Shown in pieces: positions 18,001 to 21,000 of a stretch of 64,000 bases of DNA. Numbering within the stretch: the stretch's first letter is position 1; each line of letters begins with the position of its first letter. Source of the DNA: Chrysemys picta bellii (taxonomy: Eukaryota); assembly GCF_011386835.1 (NCBI RefSeq), contig NC_088798.1, forward strand, positions 86,552,001 to 86,616,000, in the 5' to 3' direction. The notes beneath the pieces are model-generated. The model was given only the letters and a program-made list of their open reading frames with translations, was not told where the DNA came from and ran no database searches. The position numbers and the translations under genes were made by a program.

Positions 18001-21000
18001 CACTGTAAATATTTTTGATGAGAATTTTTTGTCCAGCTCTAATTATACTCCAGTCCTTCTCAACCATTTGGTTGGTGGAAGTTTTGTCTTTGATGTTGAT
18101 GGGCACAGTTCAGGTCCAAAATTAAGAATGAAGTAAACAGAAGAAGAGTCTAACTTAAAAAAGCAAAAAAACAAACAAACAAACAAATCGAGATGAGGAT
18201 CCAAAATATACAATTGATAGTCCACCCTTTAACCCAAGCCATTGGAGAAAAGGCAGCCCAACGTCATGAGAGACAGGCAGAGAAAAGAGCTTGTGATGGG
18301 GGTTTTGTTTGCATTTTGTCACTCTTTTAACATAACTTTTCATAGACTTCTCCAATTTAACACTATATATATAATTTTCTTTAGGTTTAATGGTAAACCT
18401 TTCTTTGAATTTAAGTATTGGTTTTAACAGAATACAAATCAAGAGAAAAACCTCTGTTCTCAAATCTGAATGGTGGATCTTAACTCTGAAATTCTCTGTA
18501 CACGTATGCCTGGAATGTCTATGGATACCACACAGCAGAAACAGTCAAAACTGACCATGTAACTTTTCCAAGAACAGAATTCTGTTCCTAGTAGGATTTT
18601 TTTAAAGGTATTTATTTGGTTTCAATACAATTATTTATTTTTGTTCCCTAGGATCCATTAGCTTTTTCTTTCTCTACTTAAAAACAAATTCCCATCACAC
18701 TACAGTAGCTGTTCAATACAGTGGATTCAATACAACAAATGAATTTCATGGTAAAAACATTAATACCAGCCACAGTTCTTGCTGGAACAGATTCTTTGTT
18801 GATCCAAAACACAACCTGAGACAGGACTACAGTCATGGTGCATGGAATATATGTCTGAATGAGATAGTAGCCTATTTTCCTTTGCAGATGAAAATAGAGC
18901 AGCTGAAGTGAATATTCACCTGCAACAAACAAGCAATGAAAGGTGATGAATAAATGGAATGATGACATGAGCTGTTGCAGAGACTTTAACACAGCATACC
19001 AAAAACTGTTCTAGCTGGAACAGATTCCTTATTAATCCAGAAAGACACCTGAGAAAGAATGACTGTCATAATGCAGGGAGTATAAATCTGTATCATGAAG
19101 TAGCCCATCTTCCTTTGCAAGTGGAAATAAACTGTCATTATTACGTATTCACCTGTTAGGAGACAAGTATGTCAGCATTATTTTGGCAATATATGAACAA
19201 ACATTACTGGAGTAAACTTTGGAATGTCTTAAATTAATATGCTGTGTTTTGAGGAAAGCAGTGGCGAATAATGGGCCTCCTACTATATGATAAAGTTTAG
19301 CTGATCAATAGACGCTAAAGTGAATCAACCGAGATAAAGAGAAAAGGTGAATCCGTTATTACTTTGATATGTTGTTCTACTACTGAAAAAGCAGTGTTCC
19401 TGAAAGTTACATTAAACTTTGCCCACCTATGAGCAATATGTTGAAAATCAATCTTTTGCAGGAAACAAACGAAACCTTTTCAGCAATTTTAGTTAGAGGA
19501 AGAAGAGTAAACAGTTAAGAGATAAAAAGAAAACAATTTAGTTGGTTTCCAATGAGTGTTTTATAATGTGTCAATTCTACATGAGGCTATGTCTTACCTG
19601 TGTTAGATTTAATTGTTTCACTAGACACTGTTTGTCCTATAAGATCATACTGGAGGAGACTGGAAGACTCTTGTGGTACTTCTACTGAATACAGAGGTCC
19701 CTTTTTCCATGTGTAAATGATTTCACTTTTTGGATAGGCATCTGGGGTATCATGGAGAAAAGAATCGATAGTATTAATTATATTACAGTAATGCCCAATG
19801 GCCAAAATAAATACTATGGCCCCACTATGGTAGGTGTAGTACAAACAAGGAGACTTGGTCCCTACCATTTCAAACTCTTTCTAATCTAATTAAAATTCAA
19901 TTCTAATTAAGATTCAACTCCTGAGCATAACAAACAGGAGCAGGGACAGGAAGGATGAGGGTAATAATAGTAATAATAGCTTCTCCTTCTCAACCTTCCT
20001 CTTCCACCCTGGCTCCCATGTAGCTAGCATCTCCACAGGACCCTTTTCTCCCATTTAGCAACATAGGAATGGCAGACGGTGCTCATGCCCAGGTTGAGAA
20101 CCCATAACATAGACTAACAACATGCCTCAGCTTGAGGGTTTTAAATTACATTAAGGTTCTTTTTTATTCTAATTTTAAAATTCCCTATCAACTCATAATG
20201 CATTGTTCTCCCTTAATATTTGTCTTGTTTCCCTCCATAAATAAAAGGTTATCCTGTACCCATGGCCTTTGTATTTATTTTCCCCCGGCGCTACATAGAT
20301 TACAACCACCACCCATCTACCTACCATTAAAGAGCCTTATTAAGAAACATAAGCTATCACTATGGCTCCCTGGGATGATGGGTCCCCCTCTCTCTACGTA
20401 AGCCCCCTCTTGATGTGGTGTATCTGCCACATGTGGGTCTCTGAGACTGTCAGGGCCCTGAGAGTTATCCCACTCACTCCGCTATTGCCCACATTGGAGG
20501 GGTGGTTCCCTCCAGCTGAGGGCATAAAGTCTGTTGATTGCAAGTGGTCATTTCAACATCGTTCTTCATTCAAAATATACCAGTTTCTTTAATACGTGAG
20601 GGCATGTAGTGATAACCTTTCTTCACTGCTAAAACAACAGATTTGTTAAAAGGTACCAGTATAGACTTGGCTGTGTCAGAATAACAAAAAACAATACAAT
20701 TTATAGCCATGAGCTTGCAATGAGATCCACTAGCCTGGATTCCACTGACTATGCAAAGTCCTGGTCCTAGTGGTATGCATTAGCAAATTCTGATGTGGGA
20801 TATGGGTCTATAGTTAGTTAACTCCTATTAAGGACTGCCCTAAGACCCCATTTTATGAATATATATATTAAAAACCTGAAACTTTTACAAAACTTACAGC
20901 TCCCAAACTTCAATGGACAAGCATGCCCATCCATAGGGAAGTTTACCAGCCGCATGGGACAGTCAGCATTAATGGTCAGTCTAAAATACATTAAAATAAA

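Follow-up and report, generated by a model that had tools for sequence, protein, structure and literature searches.

We analysed a stretch of 64,000 nucleotides (nt) from Chrysemys picta bellii (contig NC_088798.1, positions 86,552,001 to 86,616,000), hereafter the window. Its minus strand carries GABRA6, the gene for the alpha-6 subunit of the type A receptor for gamma-aminobutyric acid (GABA-A receptor), with coding exons that extend from about 23.6 kb to the window start, where the last exon is truncated. The conserved exons of the window match turtle and bird alpha-6 at 99-100%, exon 8 is 98.9% identical to Pelodiscus alpha-6, all 50 of 50 residues of exon 7a are identical to a solved alpha-6 chain (9oum_C), and alpha-6 homologues carry the domains PF02931 and PF02932. 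Between exons 6 and 8 lie two homologous exons, 7a and 7b. We hold with considerable confidence that they are an ancient pair of alternative exons, one of the two being joined between exon 6 and exon 8.

All exons discussed here are on the minus strand. The constitutive exon 6 (19598..19741, 144 nt) lies upstream of the pair and ends in ...AACACAG; it supplies the first base of a Gly codon that is completed by 7a or 7b alike. Exon 7a (19000..19152, 153 nt) is the canonical alpha-6 exon, recognizable by the signatures GYF, IQIYTPC, SQVSFW and PARTVF, with a pyrimidine-rich acceptor ending in ...AACAG and the donor GTATGC. It is followed, after an intron of 80 nt (18920..18999), by the alternative exon 7b (18767..18919, 153 nt), which has an open frame and AG/GT splice sites and bears the signatures GYY, SQVVFW and PARTVA. 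Its acceptor is pyrimidine-rich and ends in CAG, and its donor, GTATTA, is weaker than that of 7a. An intron of 4344 nt separates 7b from exon 8 (14163..14422, 260 nt), which encodes the rest of M2, M3 and the start of the M3-M4 loop and is the common acceptor for both. The two exons are entered in the same phase, and each is in frame with exon 8. The 7b cassette encodes the end of loop C, beta10, the pre-M1 segment, M1, the M1-M2 loop and M2 up to its 3' position. The original prediction had placed 7b at exactly these bounds and had read the peptides of both exons correctly (...PARTVF and ...PARTVA). We also find, as it had described, that VIMTV becomes SLQLL after the loop-C EY, that the M1 Gln (SQV) is retained in 7b, and that the M2 3' Phe of 7a is Ala in 7b, the 9' Leu of exon 8 (GITTVL) serving as the reference from which the 3' position was counted.

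Exons 7a and 7b are identical at 107 of 153 nt (70%) and at 36 of 50 residues, and their codons differ at 18 synonymous and 14 non-synonymous sites. When the whole 2.37-Gb assembly was searched, 7b recovered 7a at an E of about 1e-18, so their likeness is far beyond chance, and in the same search GABRA6 alone among the alpha genes had a second copy of this exon. Alignment with the paralogs of this genome confirmed the motif equivalences on which the original prediction relied, and GYYLIQ.YIP was found in the genome's glycine-receptor-like exons. The claim of a gamma-2-like M1 fared less well: IQTYIPCT and VVLS do occur in the gamma-2-like exon of this genome, but the cassette is of alpha type overall and the likeness is superficial. 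The bit scores of 7b are 77 against alpha-4, 74 against alpha-6 and about 60 against gamma-2, and 34-37 of 49 residues are shared with the alphas as against 27-30 of 48 with the gamma-like exons. With these lower gamma scores and identities, and with the alpha-type Gln kept where a gamma-type M1 would have the Trp of LSWVSFW, we rejected an origin of 7b from a gamma subunit.

Transcripts from relatives contain 7b in place of 7a. A passerine contig from the Logan collection (L030, 3038 nt) holds an uninterrupted open reading frame (182-1579, 465 amino acids (aa)) in which exon 6 is joined to 7b and 7b to exon 8, with 7a absent; a frog contig (L031, 1840 nt; reading frame 214-1590, 458 aa) has the same arrangement. 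Messenger RNAs (mRNAs) with 7b only therefore occur in a bird and in a frog, and it is from such relatives that the transcript evidence comes. Sequencing runs of several organisms also hold words of 7b, but as their RNA nature is a guess, they do not count here as a sign of expression.

The exon is also widespread in predicted proteins. We searched databases for 7b carriers, taking as query the part of a full-length protein that corresponds to 7b, and 111 and 120 proteins were listed; the bare 50-aa exon, searched against cluster representatives, retrieved mostly fragments of genomic reading frames and was informative only for P0084 and P0092. Predicted alpha-6 isoforms with a 7b-type exon were found in turtles (Pelodiscus, Caretta and Pelusios), with 7b of Pelodiscus isoform X2 identical to that of the window at 50 of 50 residues, in lizards (Anolis, Sceloporus, Podarcis and Pogona), and in dozens of birds from ostrich to passerines. 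Beyond these, the carriers include many frogs, in several species of which the 7b form is the sole annotated alpha-6, as well as lungfish, bowfin, bichir, reedfish, sturgeon, two sharks and the alpha-6a of teleosts. In these listings of 111 and 120 proteins, no mammal was among the carriers.

A tree of 46 exon peptides placed all 29 exons of 7b type on one side of a branch with a support of 99/97 and grouped the 7a exons with alpha-1 to alpha-5. Within a genome, the proportion of synonymous differences (pS) between 7a and 7b is 0.8-0.9 and hence saturated, which places the duplication far back and speaks against recent gene conversion. From these comparisons, the pair predates the split between sharks and bony vertebrates. 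The ratio of non-synonymous to synonymous divergence (dN/dS) of 7b between the window and its relatives is 0.09 for the passerine mRNA, 0.13 for the frog mRNA and 0.10 for a reptile relative; that of 7a is 0. As judged from these ratios and the conserved residues, 7b has been under purifying selection ever since, from shark to bird.

These data bear on whether 7b might be a pseudo-exon, that is, a non-functional duplicate whose annotated isoforms are homology artefacts of gene prediction. Such artefacts do seem to be present in databases: P0002-P0004, which are fragments from B10K birds, were modelled by homology, and many models that hold both exons resemble products of an aligner. However, a non-functional copy would not be expected to show an open frame, splice sites, six 7b residues kept from sharks to birds and a dN/dS of about 0.1, and the assembled mRNA contigs L030 and L031 contain 7b and skip 7a. 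Moreover, where 7b is unused it visibly decays, as in the relic and the Paramormyrops exon described below. We consider a pseudo-exon barely credible and rejected it on the grounds of selection, conservation and the two mRNAs.

The relic comes from one amniote (Logan contig L032, 1-933, from SRR26459678). Here an intact 7a is followed, at the right distance, by a 7b that has lost its AG acceptor and has acquired deletions and stops, but retains a 'WINK' segment and the arginine-region segment that follows it. The synonymous divergence (dS) of its 7a from that of the window is 0.57, compared with 0.28 for 7a of the reptile relative, and a divergence of this size would fit a mammal. The relic is likely a picture of how exon 7b was lost. 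Degenerate copies of both exons, together with other damaged alpha-6 exons, were also seen in a hypothetical protein of Xenopus laevis (P0084, XELAEV_18016985mg, 300 aa), which, to go by these lesions, may represent a decaying gabra6 homeolog of this allotetraploid frog.

In teleosts the pair has been split between two genes, the exon of gabra6a being of 7b type and that of gabra6b of 7a type. The alpha-6a of pufferfish, remora, swamp eel and cichlid has a 7b-type exon only, and hake alpha-6 (P0313) is of 7a type. A model from the elephantfish Paramormyrops (P0314) has 7a and then a degenerating 7b. For zebrafish, the supplementary alignment of PMC7973766, a machine-read copy of which we trust for these strings only, gives PARTVAG in alpha-6a and PARTVFG in alpha-6b. 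In derived teleosts, His or Gln replaces the loop-C Glu of alpha-6a. The two zebrafish genes also differ in expression, with gabra6a found mostly in the photoreceptor layer and gabra6b more broadly (PMC5922542), and zebrafish alpha-6b together with beta3 forms a receptor that is very sensitive to GABA (PMC7973766). Separation of mutually exclusive homologous exons into duplicate genes has been described before, in a survey that began from human exon pairs (Abascal, Tress and Valencia 2015, PMC4494069); because of this starting point, a pair lost in mammals, as 7a/7b seems to be, could not appear in it, which explains how 7a/7b could be missed.

We next consider which residues define each exon type. 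A comparison of 10 exons of 7a type with 29 of 7b type yielded six diagnostic columns. Two are in beta10, where exon position 3 is V/I in 7a and S/A in 7b and position 5 is M in 7a and Q in 7b. Another two lie at the pre-M1/M1 start, where M at position 15 of 7a corresponds to I/L in 7b, and F at position 18 corresponds to Y (GYF to GYY). In M1, position 36 is S in 7a and V in 7b (SQVSFW to SQVVFW), with a return to S in derived teleost alpha-6a, and position 50, at M2 3', is F in 7a and A in 7b. The six 7b-specific residues are kept across jawed vertebrates, from sharks to birds. As far as the aligned exons indicate, only one of the features shared with glycine receptors, the Tyr of GYY, is truly diagnostic of 7b. 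The Thr after the Cys, with which the match to gamma-2 becomes complete, is confined to the 7b of turtles and some lizards; the residue is Ile in birds, Ser in frogs and Phe in early fishes. The neurosteroid-site Gln and Trp of M1 and a Met that matches alpha-1 Met236 are found in both exons.

The furosemide position, exon position 22, is not among the diagnostic columns. Ile228 in M1 of alpha-6 is reportedly a determinant of furosemide sensitivity, a statement attributed to Thompson et al. 1999 that a search of the open-access literature did not confirm. Exon 7a of the window has this Ile, and 7b has Thr instead of the Ile of the furosemide-sensitive alpha-6 type. The original prediction regarded this residue as rewritten in 7b. 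The contrast itself is present in this genome, but its direction is the reverse: Thr is ancestral, and Ile arose in the 7a of amniotes. Among 7a exons, those of shark, frogs and lungfish have Thr at position 22, those of sturgeon and reedfish have Ala, and only those of amniotes have Ile; in 7b the residue is Thr save in Caretta, and alpha-1 to alpha-5 also have Thr. Position 24, which by count we take to be the homologue of alpha-1 Leu232, a residue of the etomidate pocket, follows a parallel pattern, with Thr in amniote 7a and Ile elsewhere. Given the pattern at these two positions, the IQIYTPC signature of 7a is a novelty of amniotes, and the ancestral IQTYIPC persists in 7b. The exception in 7b, Caretta caretta alpha-6 isoform X2 (P0295), reads LIQIYIPC, unlike the window and other turtles. 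With Ile in this 7b, the I/T contrast between 7a and 7b is not universal even among turtles.

These patterns also bear on the proposal that the point of 7b is a pharmacology switch at drug-site residues, yielding a furosemide-insensitive alpha-6 with a gamma-2-like M1. This would account for Ile in 7a against Thr in 7b at IQ[I/T]Y in this genome, for Thr against Ile two residues further on, and for the agreement of IQTYIPCT and VVLS with the gamma-2-like exon. Sharks, frogs and lungfish, however, have Thr in both exons, Caretta 7b has Ile, and 7b is nearer to the alphas than to gamma-2. Since the I/T contrast is confined to amniotes and is not universal there, it cannot explain a retention of more than 400 million years. 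We think it improbable that such a switch is what 7b is for; the amniote drug-site effect is probably real but a by-product. The original interpretation was thus partly right, in its residues and in the exon swap, but its emphasis on the drug site needs revising, as the aligned exons point to a late amniote feature of 7a and not to what defines 7b.

Returning to 7a and 7b as a pair of ancient alternative exons, we propose that exon 6 would be followed in the mRNA by one of the two, 7a or 7b, and this one by exon 8, giving two alpha-6 subunits that differ only within 51 residues. In the receptor, M1 forms part of the alpha(-) face, which meets beta(+) in the membrane. The functional consequences that we infer for 7b follow from this architecture. 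Its cassette would alter the alpha(-) transmembrane face that meets beta(+), which includes the furosemide/etomidate/propofol pocket with the neurosteroid site at its base. It would also alter the coupling of the extracellular domain to the membrane domain, both effects coming about through the six lineage-wide substitutions, and the first residues of the cassette would fall in the loop-C/beta10 element of alpha(+), which relays binding to the pre-M1 linker. Because the cassette covers both M1 and loop-C/beta10, exchanging 7a for 7b should change coupling, gating and the drug pocket. With the I-to-T and T-to-I changes relative to amniote 7a, the 7b receptor of turtles and birds is predicted to have a low furosemide sensitivity resembling that of alpha-1 and alpha-4. 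A furosemide-insensitive, differently gated 7b isoform, as originally proposed, is therefore a reasonable prediction from the residues.

The choice between the exons is probably cell-type specific, and the 80-nt intron that separates them could plausibly hold its regulator, aided by the weak GTATTA donor of 7b. The minus strand of this intron (18920-18999) contains 7 YCAY motifs, compared with a mean of 1.5 in shuffled sequences, and none of 5000 shuffles reached 7. In a relative (L028), the corresponding intron of 87 nt has 4 such motifs, as counted by eye. By analogy with known systems, this YCAY-rich intron may be a Nova-type splicing element. No Rbfox motif (UGCAUG) is found near the 7a/7b pair. 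Candidate branch points are present in the same intron, where TTCAT occurs twice, at distances of 17 and 27 nt to the 7b acceptor and of 53-63 nt to the 7a donor. This pair of motifs is conserved in L028, and with the longer intron of that relative included the distance to the 7a donor is 53-67 nt. The YCAY cluster overlaps the branch-point candidates.

Two inverted repeats were examined as possible structural elements, and neither was retained. An 11-nt perfect repeat (18988-18998 / 19238-19248) could form a stem that loops out 7a, in which positions +2 to +12 of the 7a donor are paired with a segment of intron 6 some 90 nt upstream of 7a; since 44% of shuffles give an 11-nt repeat, this stem was rejected. 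A comparison by eye shows no conservation of it in L028, and it is probably due to chance. An 18-nt repeat, 83% complementary (19140-19157 / 19342-19359), lies over the 7a acceptor. It spans the acceptor and the first bases of the exon (GGTGAATA, a string that also opens 7b) and has its partner in intron 6; it was rejected as evidence for hiding 7a.

As to where each form might be used, the zebrafish gene with a 7b-type exon is expressed mostly in the photoreceptor layer, and for this reason 7b may be the form of the outer retina and 7a that of granule cells in the cerebellum. In the open-access literature, GABRA6 in cones or in chick retina is mentioned only without isoform detail. Put together, these elements would amount to a second alpha-6 receptor of non-mammalian jawed vertebrates, made by way of 7b, more than 400 million years old and with its own chemistry in M1 and at the base of M2. 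It would be used in a cell type of its own, with photoreceptors or the outer retina the likeliest place, as for its teleost counterpart gabra6a, would have distinct gating, partners and drug profile, and would have been lost in mammals. We put this full proposal forward tentatively, as a possibility that we would not bet on, and well below the pairing of the exons itself in confidence.

Several observations count against the reading of 7a and 7b as exclusive alternatives or against the fuller proposal. Many predicted RefSeq and UniProt alpha-6 models, of 500-557 aa, hold 7a and 7b in tandem (P0208, P0306, P0307, P0309-P0311 and others), some with retained intron sequence. The 80-nt intron is short, yet not clearly too short for splicing of 7a to 7b. 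Nonsense-mediated decay cannot enforce exclusivity, because double inclusion and double skipping are both in frame. As regards mammals, 7b is apparently missing from them, to judge from annotation lists and the L032 relic. As regards function, zebrafish alpha-6a gave no GABA current in oocytes with beta1-3, with or without gamma2 (PMC7973766), although this null result is not decisive because alpha-4 also failed in that study. Finally, the retina idea, which may hold by analogy, draws on the expression of one teleost paralog.

The tandem models raise the question of whether both exons are normally included together, which would give an alpha-6 of ~505-518 aa with a duplicated beta10-M1 segment. 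At 153 nt (3 x 51) each, the exons in tandem are in frame, RefSeq and UniProt models with both exist in stork, owl, lizards, frogs, sturgeon, reedfish and sharks, and in the 80-nt intron plausible branch points lie at over 50 nt from the donor. In the established fold, however, a second M1 would invert the topology of M2-M4 and be unfit for a Cys-loop subunit. Besides such models, the species concerned have isoforms of normal length with 7b only, the assembled mRNAs L030 and L031 hold one exon only, and each teleost duplicate gene kept just one exon type. We regard routine double inclusion as highly unlikely, and the tandem models as either annotation artefacts or genuine in-frame double inclusion that duplicates M1. 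Inclusion of one exon at a time, from an ancient homologous pair, is the account that we prefer.

Exon pairs of this kind are known from related receptors. Exons 3A and 3B of GLRA2 are, like 7a and 7b, tandem alternative exons of equal length and homologous sequence in a vertebrate Cys-loop subunit, conserved across vertebrates. The choice between 3A and 3B is Nova-dependent and is made via an intronic YCAY element. The GLRA2 exons encode part of the extracellular domain and differ by two residues, whereas 7a and 7b cover M1 and the start of M2, and differ at 14 of 50 residues, and the alternative cassette has apparently been lost in mammals. In insects, exons 3a/b and 6c/d of RDL and exons 8a/b/c of the nicotinic alpha-6 subunit are homologous alternative exons that alter sensitivity to agonists and drugs. 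The nicotinic alpha-6 exon 8 is a transmembrane, pore-adjacent swap, as 7a/7b is. The insect pairs have an independent, arthropod origin, and the alternative exons of RDL are extracellular, unlike 7a/7b. The best-known splicing of a vertebrate GABA-A subunit, the neuron-specific gamma-2L/gamma-2S choice of GABRG2, takes place in the same gene cluster, but it concerns a 24-nt cassette in an intracellular loop, whereas 7a/7b is a homologous swap in the channel core. Teleost gabra6a and gabra6b are the gene-level equivalent of the 7b and 7a isoforms, being two genes with different expression and not splice forms. The pattern of PMC4494069 is likewise that of an ancestral exon pair which, following the teleost genome duplication, was divided among the duplicates.

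The remainder of the gene and its neighbourhood agree with this setting. Upstream coding exons, for the signal peptide and the ligand-binding domain, occupy 20833..23591 of the minus strand, with approximate bounds taken from protein-to-DNA alignment (tblastn with P0234 and P0208) and from pieces of reading frames. The start of the last coding exon is at 2..49 of the minus strand, about 14 kb downstream of exon 8, and its remainder lies beyond the window start; GABRA6 is thus incomplete in the window. On the same contig, flanking the window at 86.55-86.62 Mb, there are alpha-1-like exons at 86.41 Mb, gamma-2-like exons at 86.20 Mb and beta-like exons at 86.885 Mb. From these, the window would sit in the beta2-alpha6-alpha1-gamma2 cluster, each neighbour being named from one exon.

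In the open-access literature, we found no description of an exon pair, or of mutually exclusive or alternative splicing, for GABRA6 or for any vertebrate GABA-A alpha subunit. Isoforms with 7b are already present among RefSeq models and are apparently undescribed. For annotation, the pair serves as a warning that many database models would wrongly string 7a and 7b together. The ancestral vertebrate gene would have encoded two alpha-6 subunits with different M1 helices, of which mammals seem to keep one, and alpha-6 Ile228 is a novelty of amniote 7a. The six substitutions, constant for more than 400 million years, form a natural mutagenesis set for positions that would tune coupling or assembly. 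The teleost genes provide a clean case of alternative exons partitioned into paralogs after the teleost genome duplication, and work in chicken, Xenopus, turtle and zebrafish gains an additional predicted receptor subtype. The textbook case of a high-affinity, furosemide-sensitive, extrasynaptic GABA-A receptor is the one with alpha-6, known essentially from rodent and human work. If a separate 7b receptor does exist and was lost in mammals, a whole subtype would have escaped a GABA-A pharmacology centred on rodents and humans.

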